Sequence record: NC_019526.1
DNA: 64,000 bases
Strand: one strand, 5' to 3'
The notes beneath the pieces were generated by a model. The model was not told the DNA's origin. It did no database searches and was given only the letters and a program-made list of their open reading frames with translations. Position 1 is the first letter of the stretch; each line of letters starts with the position of its first letter. This document shows, piece by piece, positions 6,340 through 58,284 of this stretch. Made by a program: the position numbers and the translations under genes.

Positions 6340-7464
6340 ATGTCAGTGTTTCAAAAAAATACAAAATCACATTTAGAAAAGAATATGTTTTTTGATGAAG
6401 CGGTAGATATCCAACGCTTTGAAACTAACAAGTATTCTACCATTGAGAAATTAACCGAACAACAAAAAGGATTTTTCTGGAGTCCCGGTGAAGTTGACGT
6501 AAATAAAGACAAAATTGATTTTACTAAATTATCTGAAGCGGAAAAGCATATTTTCACTTCCAACCTCAAACGTCAGATACTACTTGATTCAGTACAGGGC
6601 CGTGGTCCAAACACGGTACTTCTACCACTGGCTTCGTTACCGGAAGTAGAAAATTTTATTGAAACTTGGGCGTTCTTTGAAGGTGCAATTCATAGTAAAT
6701 CATATACTCATATTATTCGTAACATCTACACCAATCCATCTGAAGTATTTGATACTATGCTTGATATTCCTGAAATTCTGGATTGTGCCGTTGACGTATC
6801 TAAGTACTATGATGATTTAGAAGAATACGGTACTTGGTATCGTATGCTTGGTGTTGGCACACATACTATCAATGGTAAAGAACTTGTTATTGACATGTAT
6901 GAACTGAAAAAGAAACTGTGGTTGTGCTTAAATTCCATTAACGTATTGGAGGGTATACGATTTTATGTCTCATTCGCTGCATCCTTTGCATTTGGTGAAA
7001 ATAAAATCATGGAAGGTAATGCCAAGATCATTAGACTAATTGCGAGGGATGAGTCTCTCCATTTAGCAGCAACTCAAATGATGCTTCGTTTGTTGAAAAA
7101 AGAAGATCCAGACTTTGTTAAAATTTCTGAAGAATGCTATGATGAAGTCCAGAGTATGTTCCTGGATGCTATTAAGCAAGAAGAAGACTGGGCTGATTAT
7201 CTATTTAAAGATGGTTCTATTATCGGTCTTAATGCTGAAATACTAAAACAGTATGTTCGCTGGATTGGATCTAAACGTATGGCAGCAGTTGGAATTAAGT
7301 GTCCATATGCTGTAACGAAAAATAGCCCACTCCCATGGATGGAACATTGGATTAGTAGTGCGGGTGTGCAGGTTGCACCACAAGAAACTGAAATTAGTTC
7401 CTATGTAATTGGTGGTATCAAAGCCGATATTACAGAAAACACGTTCAGTACATTTAAACTATAA
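6340..7464 (+). CDS. nrdB: Ribonucleotide reductase class Ia beta subunit
   Basis: FFWSPGEV, DSVQGR, EGAIHSKSY, EGIRFY, RDESLH, APQETE. Confidence 0.97.
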   Translation: MSVFQKNTKSHLEKNMFFDEAVDIQRFETNKYSTIEKLTEQQKGFFWSPGEVDVNKDKIDFTKLSEAEKHIFTSNLKRQILLDSVQGRGPNTVLLPLASLPEVENFIETWAFFEGAIHSKSYTHIIRNIYTNPSEVFDTMLDIPEILDCAVDVSKYYDDLEEYGTWYRMLGVGTHTINGKELVIDMYELKKKLWLCLNSINVLEGIRFYVSFAASFAFGENKIMEGNAKIIRLIARDESLHLAATQMMLRLLKKEDPDFVKISEECYDEVQSMFLDAIKQEEDWADYLFKDGSIIGLNAEILKQYVRWIGSKRMAAVGIKCPYAVTKNSPLPWMEHWISSAGVQVAPQETEISSYVIGGIKADITENTFSTFKL

Positions 7465-51700: not shown

Positions 51701-52192
51701 GGAGGCGACTGTATTCAGTACTGAATCAATTGATCGTTGCGTAATCAGATTCAGTTAGCGTAGTATTAGCTGGGACGCGTACTTGTGAGCCGCAACCACA
51801 ACGTACTTAAAATCCAACGCGTGGAGGGTAAGCATTCTGTACTGAATAGCAGAAGGGCTACAAAAACTTATACTTCAAAAAGGTTCGGGAAGTATTCGTA
51901 ATAAACCGTTTAATCGTCTTATCAGTGCTATGAACAACCAATATATTTGTGGTGGATATTATTGGACTCAAGTAGATGATGTTATCTTTGTACGCTTTCT
52001 AACCAAAAGGTCAGATAATAAAAATGTAAGAAAATTTCAGTACTGATAGCTGGAACCTTACTATAGTAAAAAGACCTGATATGACTCGCTTAGGTCTTTA
52101 AATTATATAATGCGAGGGACGCTACGCCTTAGTTTAGGGCTAAATCGTAAGGATTGCGTACTAAACCGCCTTGAGAGTCCCAAGGCAACTTT
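51701..52192 (+). ncRNA. Candidate large multi-pseudoknot ncRNA (~490 nt)
   Basis: GC-enriched, no long ORF; many hairpins; H-type pseudoknot 52070-52116; terminal hairpin followed by a U run. Confidence 0.6.
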
Positions 52193-52486: not shown

Positions 52487-52574
52487 GGCCGTATGTCCAA
52501 ATTGGTAAAGGAGACAGACTTAAAATCTGTTGGTGATATTCACCTTCTCGATTCGAGTTCGAGTGCGGCTACCA
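52487..52574 (+). tRNA. trnL: tRNA-Leu(TAA)
   Basis: Cloverleaf GGCCGTA/TGCGGCT, anticodon loop CTTAAAA, long variable arm, encoded CCA. Confidence 0.92.
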
Positions 52575-52603
52575 AATCTATAGTACTTCATTAGGTAAAC
52601 AAT

Positions 52604-52927
52604 ATGTGTACTGAAGCAAGAAGATATGTTTATATTTTGGTTCGCAAAGATTTAGAACTAAAGGATATTATTGTTCAAACTGCTCATGCTTCATATGAAA
52701 GTGCAAAAGAATTCAAAAATAATGCTGATAGAACATCTATTATAGTTTTAGAAGTCAAAGACTTATACAAACTAAATGATGCTAAAAGTTATTTAAATTC
52801 TAATGGTATTAATTGGACTGTGTATACTGAAAAATCTTTAGGATTTGGAGAAACTGCTATCAGTACTGAAGCACTCAATAACGAACAACGAAAAATTATG
52901 CGTAAGTTCCAATTATTGAAAGTATAA
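52604..52927 (+). CDS. PTH2-like peptidyl-tRNA hydrolase (second copy)
   Basis: YVYILVRKDL...VQTAHAS...IIVLEV...ETAIST. Confidence 0.7.
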   Translation: MCTEARRYVYILVRKDLELKDIIVQTAHASYESAKEFKNNADRTSIIVLEVKDLYKLNDAKSYLNSNGINWTVYTEKSLGFGETAISTEALNNEQRKIMRKFQLLKV

Positions 52928-52940
52928 ATATAATAACAAA

Positions 52941-53016
<76 letters not shown>

Positions 53017-53021
53017 AATTC

Positions 53022-53117
53022 AACAGGTAGTAACGCTCTTAGGTGTACATTAATATAGGAATAAGGGTTAACAGTACTGTACACAAACGAGTAACCCCGA
53101 AAGACCCGAAACCTGTT
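53022..53117 (+). ncRNA. Candidate pseudoknotted ncRNA (~96 nt)
   Basis: AACAGGT/ACCTGTT closing stem; crossing helices GTGTAC/GTACAC and GGGTTA/TAACCC. Confidence 0.55.
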
Positions 53118-53127
53118 AAAGTTTTAC

Positions 53128-53177
53128 GGATGATTATAAATCTGAATTGACAGAAACAGCTAAAACTGTTATTATCC
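53128..53177 (+). ncRNA. 50-nt three-way-junction RNA, copy 1
   Basis: GGATGAT-TATAAA-TCTG AATTGA CAGA-AACA GCTAAAAC TGTT-ATTATCC. Confidence 0.75.
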
Positions 53178-53185
53178 TATTTTAT

Positions 53186-53370
53186 TCCACAATCAGACGT
53201 ATATGGTGTAAGTTACGTCGATGAAATCCAGAACAAGATCTCTGGTACTCTAGGAAGTGGTGAATGTTAACCTAGACGGGCTTGTTAATTGGACGATAAG
53301 CAATTAATACTTGACTAGCAGGTTTAAATTAGAGGTGACTGTCCTTCACTATACTGGAAAACCGGATGGA
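53186..53370 (+). ncRNA. Candidate structured ncRNA (~185 nt) with pseudoknot
   Basis: Four hairpins; loop TGGTGAA can pair with TTCACTA at 53345. Confidence 0.5.
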
Positions 53371-53388
53371 TTTTTAATTAAAAAAGTG

Positions 53389-53417
53389 TTGAACAAAATG
53401 TTCAATAATGATATAAT
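53389..53417 (+). promoter_or_regulatory. Promoter TTGAAC-17-TATAAT containing the inverted repeat TTGAAC-N5-GTTCAA
   Basis: Repeated at 54264, 54432 and 54639. Confidence 0.7.
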
Positions 53418-53423
53418 AATTAT

Positions 53424-53505
53424 CAATGTAAGGCGTGGAACAATGTTTACAGAAGTTACTTAGTAGCCTGTACGCCCCACGTCAAGGTAGCCGAAAGGCA
53501 AGTTT
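53424..53505 (+). ncRNA. Candidate structured ncRNA (~80 nt)
   Basis: GGCGTGG/CCACGTC, TACAG/CTGTA, GCC-GAAA-GGC; starts right after a promoter. Confidence 0.45.
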
Positions 53506-53508
53506 AAT

Positions 53509-53558
53509 GGGTGGTTATAAATCTGAATTGACAGAGACTATTAAAACAGTCACCATCC
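53509..53558 (+). ncRNA. 50-nt three-way-junction RNA, copy 2
   Basis: GGGTGGT-TATAAA-TCTG AATTGA CAGA-GACT ATTAAAAC AGTC-ACCATCC. Confidence 0.75.
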
Positions 53559-53581
53559 AAATTTTAATTTAATAGTTTAGT

Positions 53582-53725
53582 ATGAATAAAAAACAAATAC
53601 ATAAACATTATGATGAAATTGCAGTGAAGGTTTTTCGTGGTGAATTAGGTTATAAACCATCTGTTAAATCTAAATATTCAAAATCTTCTTCAATAAAGTT
53701 CAATCATAAAATAGAGTTTAAATAA
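53582..53725 (+). CDS. Possible small basic protein (47 aa)
   Basis: Open frame filling the gap; no clear RBS. Confidence 0.3.
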   Translation: MNKKQIHKHYDEIAVKVFRGELGYKPSVKSKYSKSSSIKFNHKIEFK

Positions 53726-53746
53726 TACTGGACAATAATATATAAA

Positions 53747-54196
53747 ATGAATATCACTAATGTAAAAGATTTTTTAGAATATTTTATTAAGAATACTCGT
53801 GCACGTGATGAATTAGAAAAGAATGGATTCATCCAAGGTTACGATTGCACTAATTTCTTTTATACTATTGATAAACATGAATATTATGTCGATGCAATTT
53901 TAATTGATGATGATGGGTATTGCGTTGGATTTTCATTCGAAGATATATCACAAGATGCACCAATAAACTTTTATGCATTATATTATAATAAAAAAGATAA
54001 TATTTTGAAATTAGGATTTACTCGTGAATCAGATGAAGATGTTGTATTCGATTGTAACACATGGTTGGAACATGATTCATTCTTTCAAAGTACATTAATT
54101 CATAACTTTATGACAACAGATTTAGAGTACTGGAAAAATTGCATAGAATTACTTAATGTAATTTATAATGAACAAATCAAACAAAAATGGCAATAA
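53747..54196 (+). CDS. FQxS-motif family protein (paralog of 43861..44331)
   Basis: WLEHDSFFQSTLIHNFMTTDLEYWKNCI. Confidence 0.75.
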   Translation: MNITNVKDFLEYFIKNTRARDELEKNGFIQGYDCTNFFYTIDKHEYYVDAILIDDDGYCVGFSFEDISQDAPINFYALYYNKKDNILKLGFTRESDEDVVFDCNTWLEHDSFFQSTLIHNFMTTDLEYWKNCIELLNVIYNEQIKQKWQ

Positions 54197-54263
54197 TCAC
54201 AGGACGGTTCGGTATTTGGTAGTATGTTTGGCTGAATAAAGTATAAACGTTTAAAAAAAAGTG

Positions 54264-54291
54264 TTGAACAAAAAGTTCAGTACTATATAAT
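54264..54291 (+). promoter_or_regulatory. Promoter with TTGAAC-N5-GTTCAG inverted repeat
   Basis: Directly upstream of tRNA-Arg. Confidence 0.7.
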
Positions 54292-54302
54292 TGACTTACT
54301 AC

Positions 54303-54376
54303 GTCCCCTTAGTTCAGTTGGATAGAACAACTGCCTTCTAAGCAGTAGGTCACTGGTTCGAGTCCAGTAGGGGATA
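54303..54376 (+). tRNA. trnR: tRNA-Arg(TCT)
   Basis: GTCCCCT/AGGGGAT, ACTGC-CTTCTAA-GCAGT, GGTTCGAGTCC; CCA not directly encoded. Confidence 0.93.
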
Positions 54377-54431
54377 TACCATACAATATGGGAATAGTTA
54401 GAAGATATTCCCAATTTTAATTTAAAAAGTG

Positions 54432-54460
54432 TTGAACAAAAAGTTCAATAATGATATAAT
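54432..54460 (+). promoter_or_regulatory. Promoter with TTGAAC-N5-GTTCAA inverted repeat
   Basis: TTGAAC-17-TATAAT upstream of tRNA-Ser(GCT). Confidence 0.7.
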
Positions 54461-54524
54461 GGTATTATAAAAGGTTGTAATACTTAATATTAACTTTTAA
54501 GAAGATAATTAGTTATCATACACA

Positions 54525-54616
<92 letters not shown>

Positions 54617-54633
54617 TAAAATTCAATTAAAAA

Positions 54634-54767
<134 letters not shown>

Positions 54768-54775
54768 GATTTTAT

Positions 54776-54825
54776 GGATAGTTATAAAGTTGAATTAACA
54801 GCGACACTTAAAATTGTCACTATCC
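54776..54825 (+). ncRNA. 50-nt three-way-junction RNA, copy 3
   Basis: GGATAGT-TATAAA-GTTG AATTAA CAGC-GACA CTTAAAAT TGTC-ACTATCC. Confidence 0.75.
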
Positions 54826-54846
54826 AAATTTTAATTTAAATAGTAC

Positions 54847-54875
54847 TTGACAAAAATGTTCAGTACTGATACATA
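54847..54875 (+). promoter_or_regulatory. Promoter TTGACA-17-TACATA
   Basis: Variant of the tRNA-cluster promoter repeat, upstream of tRNA(CAT). Confidence 0.5.
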
Positions 54876-54884
54876 AAGAATATT

Positions 54885-54962
54885 GGCCCTTTACTCTCAA
54901 GTGGTTAGAGAATCCGACTCATAATCGGTAGGCTCTGAGTTCGAATCTCAGAAGGGCCACCA
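54885..54962 (+). tRNA. tRNA(CAT), probably Ile2 (lysidine) rather than Met
   Basis: GGCCCTT/AAGGGCC-ACCA acceptor and CGACTCATAATCG anticodon arm resemble E. coli ileX. Confidence 0.85.
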
Positions 54963-54981
54963 AATTTTAAAACATAATCTA

Positions 54982-55689
54982 ATGAAAATACAATTACAAT
55001 ATCCATATAATCAAGATTGGGATACAGGTTCATTAACAATTAATCCCGAAGGTCGAAGAACTGTTATTTTATATAACAAAACTACAAAAATCACAAGTAG
55101 TACTGCTTATGCACGATATTTGTTAGCAGTGCACAATAACAGATATTTAACTGAAAATGAAGAAGCTGACCATATTGATGAAGATTTCACTAATGATGAT
55201 ATATCTAATCTTCAAATTTTGACAATAGAAGAACATAGAGCTAAATCAATTGCGAATGGTATTCAAGCTAAATATGATGAATTTGTGTGTAAAGGTTGTG
55301 GAATAAAATTTTTAAGAAGACATAATCAAGTTAAGTCATATACAAAATATTGTAGTAAAAAATGTTCTTGGAAAAATAATCCTCCACCAACAAAAACAAA
55401 AAATGGTGACACGACAATCGATTATGATAAAGTAAAAGAATATATAAACGATGGATTGTCAGATACTGAAATTGCAAAGAAAATGAATATAAATCGCAAT
55501 TCAGTACTAAATTATAGAACTAAACACAATATACCTTCTAAAAAATTTGCTAATGTTAATATTTTAGAAGATAATATTGATGAAATAAAACAACGTTTGC
55601 TTTCTGGTGAAAAGAAAGTTGATATATACAAAAGCTATGGTTCTTCAAAAAATGTTTTTGCAAGATTTTTAAAGAGACATGGATTATAA
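54982..55689 (+). mobile_element. HNH homing endonuclease with HTH tail, inside the tRNA cluster
   Basis: EEADHIDEDFTNDDISNLQILTIEEH (HNH), CxxC/YCSKKC, two HTH-like segments. Confidence 0.8.
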
Positions 55690-55698
55690 TAGAATAAT

Positions 55699-55771
55699 GA
55701 CTCTGTAGCACAATCGGTGGTGCGATTGACTGTTAATCAATTGGTTGGGGATTCGAGTTCCTCCAGAGTCG
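55699..55771 (+). tRNA. trnN: tRNA-Asn(GTT)
   Basis: GACTCTG/CAGAGTC, ATTGA-CTGTTAA-TCAAT; no encoded CCA. Confidence 0.9.
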
Positions 55772-55790
55772 CTTAACAAACCAAAGAATT

Positions 55791-55937
55791 GTACCTAAAT
55801 AACGAGTATATGGATTCTCTATGATTGTCCCTGTATGAGTTAGAGAGATTATTCATAAGAAGTCGAGTGTATAGATTCTCAAAGAAATGATTGTTTATAC
55901 ATGAGTTATCTTAAAACGAATATCTCAAGGTACACCA
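55791..55937 (+). ncRNA. Candidate CCA-ended RNA with pseudoknot (~147 nt)
   Basis: GTACCT/AGGTAC + ACCA; TCTCTA/TAGAGA with TATGAGT/ATTCATA pseudoknot. Confidence 0.5.
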
Positions 55938-55944
55938 AACAATT

Positions 55945-55993
55945 GACTCTGTAGTTCAGTTGGTAGATCTTATATAGTTACCAACCAGAGTCG
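55945..55993 (+). ncRNA. tRNA-Asn-derived mini hairpin (lacks anticodon and T arms)
   Basis: Acceptor strands identical to tRNA-Asn (GACTCTG/CAGAGTC-GCT); D-arm-like GTTCAGTTGGTAGA. Confidence 0.55.
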
Positions 55994-56001
55994 CTTACAA
56001 T

Positions 56002-56066
56002 GGAAGGTGGTAATACGTCAGTATTACCTTTTAAGACCGAAGATATGAGTATCTTCCCTTCCACCA
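56002..56066 (+). ncRNA. 65-nt tRNA-like RNA ending in ACCA
   Basis: GGAAGG/CCTTCC-ACCA; GGTAATAC-GTCA-GTATTACC; GAAGATA-TGAG-TATCTTC. Confidence 0.6.
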
Positions 56067-56068
56067 CA

Positions 56069-56157
56069 CATTGTACTCTTCTCCCGTAAGGAGAATGACA
56101 AAAAACTATCCGAAAGATAGAAAGCCTGAAATAACAGGGTGCAATTAAATTACAATG
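56069..56157 (+). ncRNA. Candidate four-way-junction RNA
   Basis: CATTGTA/TACAATG enclosing three hairpins. Confidence 0.5.
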
Positions 56158-56160
56158 GGA

Positions 56161-56353
<193 letters not shown>

Positions 56354-56377
56354 TTAATTTAAATGGAGTACTGAATA

Positions 56378-56578
56378 ATGTCCAAATATGTTAATCGTCA
56401 AAAACGAAAAGCACGTACTAAGGACGAAATTCTACAGTTGATTCAAAAAAATCAAAAAGATGTAGTTATTGAAGAATATATTTTTCAGTACGGTAATCAA
56501 CAATCAATGGTACAAGAAAGTAATGGTAAGTATCATTCTGAACATTACGACCTTATTAAAAGAATTCTTTTGAAATAA
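56378..56578 (+). CDS. Hypothetical protein
   Basis: 66 aa ORF, GGAG RBS. Confidence 0.65.
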   Translation: MSKYVNRQKRKARTKDEILQLIQKNQKDVVIEEYIFQYGNQQSMVQESNGKYHSEHYDLIKRILLK

Positions 56579-56733
56579 ACAATAATACTCATCATCTAAT
56601 ATCAGTACTGATGCGTATCAGCAGGTGGCTTGATGGGCAGTACTGACAGGATACATCGTTCTCCGGTGGCGGGTTCGGTGGATATACGTAAAGTCGTATT
56701 GGGTATACCAAATATAATAATAAAAATATGTAA

Positions 56734-56809
56734 TAATGTGATAGCTCAAATAGGTAGAGCGGGAGGCCAAAGTGCTGACTGGTTTGTGAGTTCGATTCTC
56801 ACCCATTAT
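56734..56809 (+). pseudogene. Degenerate tRNA (anticodon arm not canonical)
   Basis: TAGCTCAAATAGGTAGAGC D arm and GTGAG-TTCGATT-CTCAC T arm intact; acceptor imperfect. Confidence 0.6.
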
Positions 56810-56820
56810 TAATAAAATTG

Positions 56821-56851
56821 TAAGCTACCCTGTTATTTGGGTAGCTTTTTC
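56821..56851 (+). terminator. Rho-independent terminator
   Basis: AAGCTACCC-TGTTATTT-GGGTAGCTT-TTT. Confidence 0.75.
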
Positions 56852-56874
56852 TTTTTATATAACAAGAGATTATT

Positions 56875-57291
56875 ATGAGTAAATTAACTTTACTGAATAT
56901 TTTACAAGAATGCTATGAAAAACTTGAAAATTCCAATCCAAGTGTCATATTCAACTCATCATTTGATAATTATTCTACTTCAAATTATAAAGCAAAAATT
57001 TTAGTATATAATCACTTTGATTTATCATCATTAAGTGATTGTAGTAACATTTACTTACACATTTGTGACTACAATGATGATAGTGGGTATACTATGACGA
57101 TTGATATTTACAAAGGATATTTTTATTATAAAAATAAAAAATTTGACAATTTTGAAAATTTATTCCCATTGACTGAAGATACAATGTTTCAGTACTCAAC
57201 ACTTTATGACACATCCTCCTTGACAATGGATGAGTTAAATTTTATAATGTCTATTAGTTTGGATATTCCAATTTATGAAGCAGCATTATAA
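56875..57291 (+). CDS. FQxS-motif family protein
   Basis: TEDTMFQYSTLYD. Confidence 0.75.
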   Translation: MSKLTLLNILQECYEKLENSNPSVIFNSSFDNYSTSNYKAKILVYNHFDLSSLSDCSNIYLHICDYNDDSGYTMTIDIYKGYFYYKNKKFDNFENLFPLTEDTMFQYSTLYDTSSLTMDELNFIMSISLDIPIYEAAL

Positions 57292-57308
57292 AATCTAGGA
57301 GCATTTTT

Positions 57309-57461
57309 ATGAAAATTAAGTGTTGTGTATGTGATTGTGAAATTGATGAAAAGCATGTATATGGCGAATGGGATGATTACTGCTCTGATTGCTGGGAATC
57401 TGAAGGACGTGATACAGAACGTTGGGAAGATGAGAGCGAGTGGGATGAGGATGAAGAATGA
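57309..57461 (+). CDS. Small acidic zinc-binding protein (50 aa, not in the ORF track)
   Basis: MKIKCCVCDCEIDEKHVYGEWDDYCSDCWESEG...; GGAG RBS. Confidence 0.6.
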   Translation: MKIKCCVCDCEIDEKHVYGEWDDYCSDCWESEGRDTERWEDESEWDEDEE

Positions 57462-57607
57462 AAGACCAAAATTGGTTGGGTTGACCATCAAAAAGTATCA
57501 CTATGTGGTTCAAAGAAAGTCGCAGTAATGATACGGTGGGATATAAGAAGCGTATGTTAGAAGAGTTATCATCAACGTCAAGAAACTAATATTATCACGG
57601 AGAAAGT

Positions 57608-57928
<321 letters not shown>

Positions 57929-57942
57929 TGAATAGATTTATA

Positions 57943-58040
57943 GGACATACTGCGGGATCTGTTTTTAAGGCTTAGGTACTTCAGTACTAAAACAATACCT
58001 TAGAAACGGAGTCCAAGTTGAATTCTTGGAATGTCCACCA
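57943..58040 (+). ncRNA. 98-nt tRNA-like RNA (6-bp acceptor + 6-bp T stem, ACCA end)
   Basis: GGACAT/ATGTCC-ACCA; TCCAAG-TTGAATT-CTTGGA; 12-bp central helix. Confidence 0.65.
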
Positions 58041-58044
58041 AATT

Positions 58045-58118
58045 ACCGCCTTAGAACAATTGGTAGTGTAACTTGATTTGTAATCAGTAGGTTATATGTT
58101 CGAGTCAGATAGGTGGCA
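58045..58118 (+). pseudogene. Degenerate tRNA-Thr(TGT)
   Basis: Cloverleaf with TTTGTAA loop but mismatches in the acceptor, D, anticodon and T stems. Confidence 0.65.
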
Positions 58119-58284
58119 CAAATAATAATAGTACTAGTAAGGTTTATTTACAGTTATGGATTCTTCTTTATATTCTAGTACTATTTCGTTTTTTAATAAA
58201 CAATTCAAAACTTTATTTTTTTTAATTTACTTAGGCTGATTCATTGAATCGGCCATTTTCTTTGTTAACAAAAGAGATAAAAAT

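Follow-up and report, generated by a model that had tools for sequence, protein, structure and literature searches.

A family of tRNA-like small RNAs without an anticodon arm in the tRNA clusters of RaK2-like jumbo phages

Near the end of the transfer RNA (tRNA) region of Klebsiella phage RaK2 (vB_KleM_RaK2), a 98-nucleotide (nt) sequence folds like a tRNA in which a single long helix takes the place of the anticodon arm. It lies on the plus strand at positions 57943–58040 of the window, the 64,000-nt stretch of record NC_019526.1 that was analysed, and corresponds with 100% identity to RaK2 181943–182040 (offset 124000); window positions are used throughout unless another sequence is named. 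Together with six relatives from other phages and contigs, it constitutes a new small-RNA family in the tRNA clusters of RaK2-like jumbo phages that is absent from Rfam and from genome annotations. Comparative sequence evidence indicates that this tRNA-like RNA is a selected, structured RNA. As the defining tests for a tRNA, a transfer-messenger RNA (tmRNA) and a YrlA RNA all failed, it is filed as a new family of tRNA-like RNA.

A first-pass annotation of the window had proposed a tRNA mimic at this site, and its sequence and pairings were reproduced by the minimum-free-energy fold of 57943–58040 (-29.8 kcal/mol; z = -3.5; 0 of 200 shuffles as stable). From 5′ to 3′, the RaK2 copy is composed as follows.

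57943–58040, plus strand: the whole tRNA-like RNA gene, 98 nt, delimited from the fold and from covariance-model matches
57943–57948, plus strand: 5′ strand of the acceptor stem, GGACAU, forming 6 base pairs (bp) with 58031–58036
57949–57957, plus strand: stemless D-like loop, ACUGCGGGA, 9 nt unpaired; family consensus A-N-U-G-C-G-K-K-A
57958–57970, plus strand: 5′ strand of the long helix, forming 13 bp with 57998–58010
57971–57974, plus strand: 5′ side of the internal loop, CUUA, of which ..UA is kept in the family
57975–57988, plus strand: apical hairpin, GGUAC-UUCA-GUACU, with 5 bp, a 4-nt loop and one AGTACT copy
57989–57997, plus strand: 3′ side of the internal loop, AAAACAAUA, of which AAU(A/G) beside the helix is kept in the family
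57998–58010, plus strand: 3′ strand of the long helix, pairing with 57958–57970
58011–58011, plus strand: single-nucleotide linker, G, between the long helix and the T stem; A in Erwinia phage pEa_SNUABM_47
58012–58030, plus strand: T arm, with a 6-bp stem UCCAAG/CUUGGA (58012–58017 with 58025–58030) and the loop UUGAAUU at 58018–58024
58031–58036, plus strand: 3′ strand of the acceptor stem, AUGUCC, pairing with 57943–57948
58037–58040, plus strand: discriminator A, invariant in the family, and encoded CCA

The acceptor and T stems form the 12-bp stack ending in A-CCA that had been described from the letters. Its division into 6+6 rather than 7+5 is compatible with the data and stays unproven: a 7+5 frame with a conserved A7–A66 mismatch would fit as well, the stack has 12 bp either way, and covariation cannot choose between them because U58012:A58030 and A7 are unvarying in all seven members. 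The TTGAATT that had been called T-loop-like appears in the fold as the loop UUGAAUU and is invariant in the seven members. Positions 1, 2 and 5 of this loop retain U, U and A, with G instead of C at position 3; every true tRNA from the scans has C there, and G was found only in the tRNA-like RNA family. The nine unpaired nucleotides of the D-like loop form no stem, as claimed, and the loop is conserved in the homologues.

The long helix does replace the anticodon arm, with 13 bp rather than the 12 bp first counted, the additional pair being an outer one. Its pair probabilities are ~1.0, and forbidding it costs 12.7 kcal/mol and gives no cloverleaf. As a single nucleotide separates it from the T stem, the long helix is placed like the variable arm of class II tRNAs or helix 2a of tmRNA. 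The distal AGTACT-based hairpin was correctly described as lacking a canonical 7-nt anticodon loop; its 4-nt loop is therefore not an anticodon loop. Across the family, this apical hairpin varies in length and sequence, with loops of 4 to ~14 nt.

A strict descriptor, consisting of a 12-bp acceptor plus T stack, a 7-nt loop and NCCA, was run over both strands of the whole 64 kb. It matched three sites, namely two true tRNAs and the tRNA-like RNA, compared with an average of 0.33 in dinucleotide shuffles. A relaxed descriptor applied to every locus retrieved up to that stage matched nearly exclusively true tRNAs, the exceptions being the tRNA-like RNA, phage T4 rnaC and one likely chance site. 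The tRNA-like RNA thus possesses the tRNA hallmarks of a 12-bp acceptor/T-stem stack, a 7-nt T loop and a discriminator followed by CCA.

Conventional searches with the RaK2 copy retrieved little. A 'distant' blastn search of 50,697 phage records (E up to 10) returned RaK2 and phiKp_21 only, the phiKp_21 copy being identical; exact or degenerate patterns of the RaK2 copy found RaK2 alone in IMG/VR, and a pattern search of JGI metagenomes found nothing. Homologues were instead reached largely through open reading frame (ORF) 225, the gene immediately upstream, of which Logan and ENA contigs carry 61–81% identical homologues. On contigs with ORF225 homologues, a covariance model derived from the sequence and fold of the RaK2 copy (R1) detected homologues of the RNA, in L014, L016, L029 and later L028. 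Patterns from blocks conserved between RaK2 and L016 retrieved L024, a 366-kb IMG/VR contig, and blastn with the divergent members found an unannotated member at 316667–316769 of pEa_SNUABM_47 (Eneladusvirus). A metagenome search via an ORF225 alignment yielded only a Felixounavirus-like locus without the tRNA-like RNA.

The family comprises seven distinct sequences (RaK2 plus six) of ~98–103 nt, 61–98% identical to one another. Members score 58.6–125 bits with R1 and 72.7–107 bits with the family model R2, the RaK2 copy scoring 125 and 107, respectively. The six beyond RaK2 belong to Alcyoneusvirus-like, Asteriusvirus-like and Munch-like contigs and to pEa_SNUABM_47; the flanks of L016 are Asteriusvirus-like, and those of L024 are related to Salmonella phage Munch. 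No Rfam model (4227 models, E up to 10) matched in a 401-nt search of RaK2 or in the six other members. Nothing is annotated at 57943–58040 in the RaK2 record, the phiKp_21 record or the RaK2 paper (PMC3622015), no ORF of at least 40 amino acids (aa) overlaps the site, and literature searches found no description of the RNA.

Several other candidates were rejected. The site L015:2207–2294 (18.7–23 bits) and the pair formed by window 53550–53647 and phage Muenster L002:3236–3333 (20–23 bits) lack both a T loop and a proper acceptor stem. The latter two are AT-rich with a similar central segment, and are either a very degenerate paralogue or chance. Loci L030–L032, retrieved with genome_contigs patterns, and L025–L027, retrieved with 5′ patterns in IMG/VR, gave no structural match and were taken as chance.

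Covariation across the seven members supports all four helices. In a model-guided alignment, 96.1% of alignment cells form standard pairs, versus 36–53% when the 3′ partners are slid by 1–3 columns. Two-sided compensatory changes occur in 16 of 29 pairs: 3 of 6 in the acceptor stem, 6 of 13 in the long helix, 3 of the 4 modelled pairs of the apical hairpin and 4 of 6 in the T stem. Acceptor pairs 4, 5 and 6 each carry such changes, and G1:C and G2:C are invariant. Column shuffles reached the observed covariation values in 0 of 500 cases on four of five measures and in 1 of 500 on the fifth. Since a covariance-model alignment leans towards the structure of its model, a from-scratch run with MAFFT and RNAalifold was made as well; it recovered the acceptor stem, the long helix and the T stem, with compensatory changes in 13 of 25 pairs.

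Conservation outside the pairs is concentrated in a few places. In the D-like loop, A7, U9, G10, C11, G12 and A15 are invariant in seven of seven members, as are the base of the long helix, the T loop UUGAAUU, the outer U:A and closing G:C pairs of the T stem, and the discriminator A. Four members have a CCA tail at the 3′ end; in the remaining three it reads UCA, CUA or CCC. Between RaK2 and L014, the RNA differs at 2 of 98 positions (98% identical) and the DNA of the adjoining ORF225 is 87% identical.

The downstream neighbour, tRNA-Thr(UGU), is weak in RaK2 (34.4 bits), with an A1·C72 mismatch and one T-stem mismatch. Its L014 orthologue has G1 and no A1·C72 mismatch, and scores 49 bits. 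Beside it, the tRNA-like RNA of RaK2 has no broken pair. The covariation, the contrast between RaK2 and L014, and the intact pairs next to a damaged tRNA-Thr therefore exclude a decaying pseudogene and chance. Among the checks suggested by the first-pass annotation, homologue covariation thus spoke for the structure, through compensatory changes in seven distinct homologues, and against its own caveat of a decayed canonical tRNA with no conserved structure; ARAGORN and Rfam left the RNA unrecognised.

In every member, the tRNA-like RNA lies on the coding strand within a run of ORFs and tRNAs, with a stop codon or a tRNA 0–14 nt away, and spacers of 0–8 nt occur on at least one side of it in these arrays. 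A tRNA follows after 4–7 nt in L014, L016 and L029 and after 4 nt in RaK2. The stop codon of the preceding ORF overlaps G1 in L024 and L028; the next tRNA is 60 nt away in pEa_SNUABM_47, and none lies downstream in L028. These context statistics are biased, because several members were reached via one neighbouring gene.

RaK2 carries eight tRNAs at 52487–58119 (ARAGORN and Rfam), interspersed with HNH endonuclease genes in a region rich in homing endonucleases. A candidate promoter and a terminator-like hairpin flank ORF224, ORF225, the tRNA-like RNA and tRNA-Thr.

57220–57248, plus strand: sigma-70-type promoter, TTGACA-17-TATAAT, from a pattern scan; a consensus match only
57608–57928, plus strand: ORF225, 106 aa, function unknown; its stop lies 14 nt upstream of the tRNA-like RNA, in the same indel module
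58041–58119, plus strand: spacer AAUU (4 nt) followed by tRNA-Thr(UGU) at 58045–58119 (ARAGORN; Rfam 34.4 bits)
58234–58254, plus strand: intrinsic-terminator-like hairpin with a U-rich tail, from a pattern scan

Judged by its match to the consensus, the promoter is likely to be the start of the transcription unit that holds the tRNA-like RNA. The hairpin, whose site carries a terminator annotation in phage Muenster, is likely to be its end, and tRNA-Thr(UGU) is the likely partner of the tRNA-like RNA in a dimeric precursor.

The distribution of the tRNA-like RNA is patchy. A ~0.75-kb module consisting of ORF225, the tRNA-like RNA and tRNA-Thr (~57463–58233) is missing from Muenster, K64-1, KP13-7 and RCIP0023. 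The syntenic regions of Muenster, Munch and SD-2_S15 do not contain the RNA, nor do the portions of 121Q and Ecwhy_1 that were inspected; the gap in K64-1 was seen by blast only. The tRNA-like RNA is an accessory element. Between RaK2 and phiKp_21, the module differs at 2 positions and the flanking ORF226 by ~4%, a disparity that points to recent exchange or mosaicism. ORF225 was considered as a dedicated partner of the RNA and rejected, as its homologues occur without the RNA in 121Q, Felixounavirus and L018–L023, and the RNA occurs without an adjoining ORF225 in L024 and pEa_SNUABM_47.

Two further elements accompany the tRNA-like RNA in some members. In L024, an odd 88-nt tRNA-like gene (7072–7159) begins 2 nt after the tRNA-like RNA; its acceptor stem has 7 bp, its T arm is canonical, and it carries ACCA. 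This gene is called an aberrant 'Gly' by ARAGORN and is unrecognised by the Rfam tRNA model. L028 lacks it, owing to a clean indel that lies between two CCACCA ends. A conserved block of ~130 nt lies directly downstream of the tRNA-like RNA in L024 (7163–7289) and L028 (1835–1964), and 1.2 kb upstream of it in RaK2 (56592–56722, overlapping the annotated ORF222). In this block, two AGTAC(T) copies flanking a variable insert make up the stem of a long hairpin, and smaller hairpins come after it. For the three sequences, RNAalifold predicts 39 pairs, 9 with compensatory changes; instead of a gene, the block may be a further structured RNA that has gone unannotated.

Among known RNAs, the tRNA-like domain of tmRNA (SsrA) is the closest in architecture. 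Both combine an acceptor stem bearing A73-CCA with a T arm, a stemless D loop and a long helix 5′ of the T arm, and both lack an anticodon arm. The phage RNA differs in being ~100 nt long, without pseudoknots, an mRNA-like domain or a tag frame, and in having A3:U70 (six of seven members), a stack that folds as 6+6 rather than 7+5, and G rather than C at T-loop position 3. Neither the tmRNA mode of ARAGORN nor the Rfam tmRNA models gave anything overlapping any family member. The likeness to a tmRNA tRNA-like domain without its mRNA part, as first noticed from the letters, is hence upheld for the architecture and lost on the particulars: G3·U70 is missing in six of seven members, there is no tag frame, and neither search program assigns the RNA to tmRNA.

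The closest system in biology is rnaC (species 1; also rnaD) of phage T4, which likewise lies in a phage tRNA cluster on the strand of the tRNAs and is non-decoding. Its fold has a canonical T arm beside a terminal acceptor-like stem, with long extra hairpins, and among the descriptor matches it was the one other non-tRNA located in a tRNA cluster. To our knowledge, the function of rnaC has remained unknown for decades. It differs from the present family in its length (139 nt), its two long hairpins, its imperfect acceptor stem without an encoded CCA, and its occurrence in Straboviridae. Neither R1 nor R2 matched in the T4 locus (L009), and there is no sequence similarity to rnaC.

Class II tRNAs (Ser, Leu and Tyr) share the acceptor/T minihelix, the discriminator with CCA, a T loop of the U54/A58 type and a long extra arm located one nucleotide before the T stem. 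The tRNA-like RNA differs from them in lacking a D stem and an anticodon stem-loop, and its extra arm has 13 bp plus a hairpin as compared with 3–7 bp. The RaK2 copy weakly resembles tRNA-Ser(UGA) of the same phage. The tRNA model RF00005 (E up to 10) gave no match in the 401-nt search or in the six other members, and ARAGORN, run on the strand of the tRNA-like RNA with introns allowed and thresholds down to 70%, reported nothing. A 99-nt class II tRNA with a non-canonical anticodon loop was noted in the rV5-like phage FV3 (L006:1390–1488; ARAGORN 'tRNA-???'), 5 nt upstream of tRNA-Thr and so positioned as in RaK2. Homology to this RNA was considered and rejected: there is no similarity, and the FV3 RNA scores as a tRNA with 35.5 bits.

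YrlA (RF02553) is a non-coding RNA of bacteria and some phages that also contains a tRNA-like module, with a T arm and D-like elements. In YrlA, however, the termini form a Ro-binding helix and the acceptor-like stem is closed, whereas the termini of the phage RNA are themselves an acceptor stem with a free CCA; no RF02553 match overlapped a family member. The t-elements of plant mitochondria and signals of the mascRNA type likewise have a tRNA-like fold that RNase P and RNase Z would cut out of a longer transcript (PMC1920247). Those elements are eukaryotic or organellar and are defined by their processing outcome, whereas the phage family conserves a long helix and loop nucleotides that processing does not need.

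It is moderately probable, and the reading favoured here, that the family represents a conserved non-decoding small RNA that is matured like a tRNA and works in trans as a tRNA mimic. Without an anticodon loop, it cannot decode. The RNA would be transcribed within a polycistron, from the promoter near 57220 to the terminator near 58234. RNase P recognises the 12-bp stack, the T loop and the RCCA tail of its substrates, and by the rules of bacterial tRNA maturation it would cut 5′ of G57943 as on a tRNA. Cleavage at the 5′ end of tRNA-Thr would leave a 4-nt trailer for exonucleases to trim to CCA, and in members with a tail that is one base off, a CCA-adding enzyme would repair it. RaK2 carries the gene for a putative enzyme of this kind (PMC3622015).

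Because G is invariant at T-loop position 3 and the D-like loop contains an invariant G-C, a tRNA elbow rebuilt from G10·U55 and C11:G56, in which the 19:56 pair is swapped, is proposed, with D-like loop G10–C11 docking onto T-loop U55–G56. A tRNA-recognising protein would thereby be offered an acceptor end, an elbow and an arm in the position of a class II variable arm; a family-specific partner could be held by the conserved internal loop. For the final step, the preferred and speculative proposal is that the RNA is a decoy, or a competitor, aimed at some tRNA-attacking or tRNA-sensing factor of the host. This step is favoured because the distribution is patchy and accessory, because the region is rich in endonucleases, and because phage tRNAs counter defences that cut the variable arms of class II tRNAs, where they may act as decoy or supplement (PMC13096335). 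In its most specific form, the RNA would be a dedicated non-decoding decoy that mimics a class II tRNA or the tRNA-like domain of tmRNA and soaks up a host factor as an RNA-based counter-defence; this is put forward tentatively, as a possibility well short of probable. Its targets could be class II variable-arm nucleases (PtuAB/Septu, retron-Eco7), modifiers of the CCA end (nucleotidyltransferases of the AbiEii/MenT type, pyrophosphokinases of the CapRel type) or SmpB.

Several points weigh against a trans-acting tRNA mimic. Both its maturation and its action in trans are deduced wholly from tRNA-processing rules, and no connection of the RNA with any particular defence system or protein partner was found. 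Structural conservation would be expected equally of an element that acts in processing purely in cis. The family sample is small, with seven distinct sequences, five of which were reached via one neighbouring protein. The model-guided alignment favours the structure it was given, a lean that the MAFFT and RNAalifold run offsets.

The cis-acting alternative would make the tRNA-like RNA a processing module of the t-element kind, recruiting RNase P and 3′ enzymes to cut the polycistron, so that the 3′ end of the upstream mRNA (ORF225 in RaK2) is set, the 5′ end of the downstream tRNA is freed, and the excised RNA itself is functionless. Every member does directly adjoin an ORF stop codon or a tRNA, at 14 nt after ORF225 in RaK2, and a tRNA begins 2–7 nt downstream in RaK2, L014, L016, L029 and L024. 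The definition of mRNA ends by t-elements in plant mitochondria (PMC1920247) offers a precedent. For such a task, however, a minihelix would suffice, yet the 13-bp helix, the internal-loop nucleotides, the apical hairpin and the D-like loop are conserved or covary. Moreover, L028 has no downstream tRNA, the next tRNA in pEa_SNUABM_47 is 60 nt off, and relatives without the element manage with the same flanking genes. This explanation is considered unlikely. A charged, tmRNA-like RNA that would bind SmpB and/or EF-Tu and enter stalled ribosomes, with their release or a block of host trans-translation as the outcome, is judged distinctly improbable. In its favour, the architecture is that of the tRNA-like domain of Escherichia coli tmRNA, G1:C72, G2:C71 and A73 do not vary, and G3·U70 is present in one member (L029); helix 2a of tmRNA is a mimic of the class II variable arm, and tmRNAs that lack a tag template occur in jakobid mitochondria. 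The other six members have A3:U70, however, which under the identity rules of tRNA-Ala abolishes charging by alanyl-tRNA synthetase. The family also lacks a resume codon, a tag frame and any sequence similarity to host-type tmRNA ends, and the negative tmRNA searches held at relaxed ARAGORN thresholds too.

Descent from a duplicated class II tRNA, for example a tRNA-Ser remnant now decaying in a cluster full of homing endonucleases, would account for the resemblance of the RaK2 copy to RaK2 tRNA-Ser(UGA), which beats shuffles (whole sequence, z = 4.6; core, z = 3.1; p ~0.009, uncorrected). HNH endonuclease genes lie among the tRNA genes, and endonuclease-driven amplification of phage tRNA segments is documented (PMC13096335). 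The similarity is not family-wide, however: z is at most 1 in four of seven members, and the shared 8-mer is not conserved. Compensatory changes have kept four helices across members that are 61–98% identical, with 96% of cells pairing, and identities of 61–81% exclude the other six members as recent copies of one sequence. An ancient tRNA origin is possible; present-day decay is not, and a decaying pseudogene is deemed very improbable. Scarcely credible is a fold that arises by chance from a DNA-level signal, such as the AGTACT palindrome or a promoter for tRNA-Thr. AGTACT occurs in 151 copies in the window versus ~13 expected, one of them in the apical hairpin, and it is found in sigma-70-like promoter spacers upstream of three tRNAs. 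This explanation fails: of all parts of the RNA, the AGTACT-bearing tip is conserved least, with no AGTACT there in L016, L024, L028 and L033; in addition, no good -10 element lies downstream of the AGTACT hairpin, and the helices covary as RNA.

As replacement tRNAs rescue phages from tRNA-cutting immunity, phage tRNA clusters have come to be seen as counter-defence islands, in which the tRNA-like RNA is a new player. It keeps everything that a tRNA-binding protein sees except the decoding part. Such an RNA is missed by tRNA finders, Rfam and annotation alike, and similar mimics are therefore probably under-counted. As a natural minimal tRNA-like domain without an mRNA part and with an apparently swapped elbow pair, it is suited as a compact probe of RNase P, the CCA-adding enzyme, aminoacyl-tRNA synthetases, EF-Tu and SmpB. 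It likewise makes a 50-year-old question open to testing, namely what purpose the non-decoding stable RNAs of phage tRNA clusters, such as T4 species 1 and 2, serve.

Some features of the surrounding region were noted in passing. On contigs with ORF225 homologues (L019:6460–6684, L020, L021 and L022), a 74-aa gene matching the Pfam family Acb2_Tad1_hairpin lies ~2.6 kb downstream. This is a family of anti-CBASS/Thoeris sponges, and the match suggests that the tRNA-rich neighbourhood also holds counter-defence genes. In RaK2, tRNA-Leu(UAA) at 52487–52574, tRNA-Gly(UCC) at 52941–53016 and tRNA-Met(CAU) at 54885–54962 are supported by Rfam scores of 52–58 bits and ARAGORN calls, and are absent from the annotation of the RaK2 record. 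The RaK2 paper lists five tRNAs and two 'pseudo-tRNAs' (His and Val) (PMC3622015).

The AGTACT motif is itself conspicuous, with examples at 51717, 54279, 54654, 54862 and 57983. The longer form TTCAGTACT is present in 57 copies versus 0.74 expected, and the consensus is TTCAGTACTGAA. Neither the RaK2 paper nor a literature search offered an explanation of the motif. About 85% of AGTACT copies lie within ORFs, mostly in two reading frames, and the motif is therefore not simply a promoter. It does occur in the promoter spacers ahead of tRNA-Arg, tRNA-Ser and tRNA-Met, and it is also present in phage 121Q.

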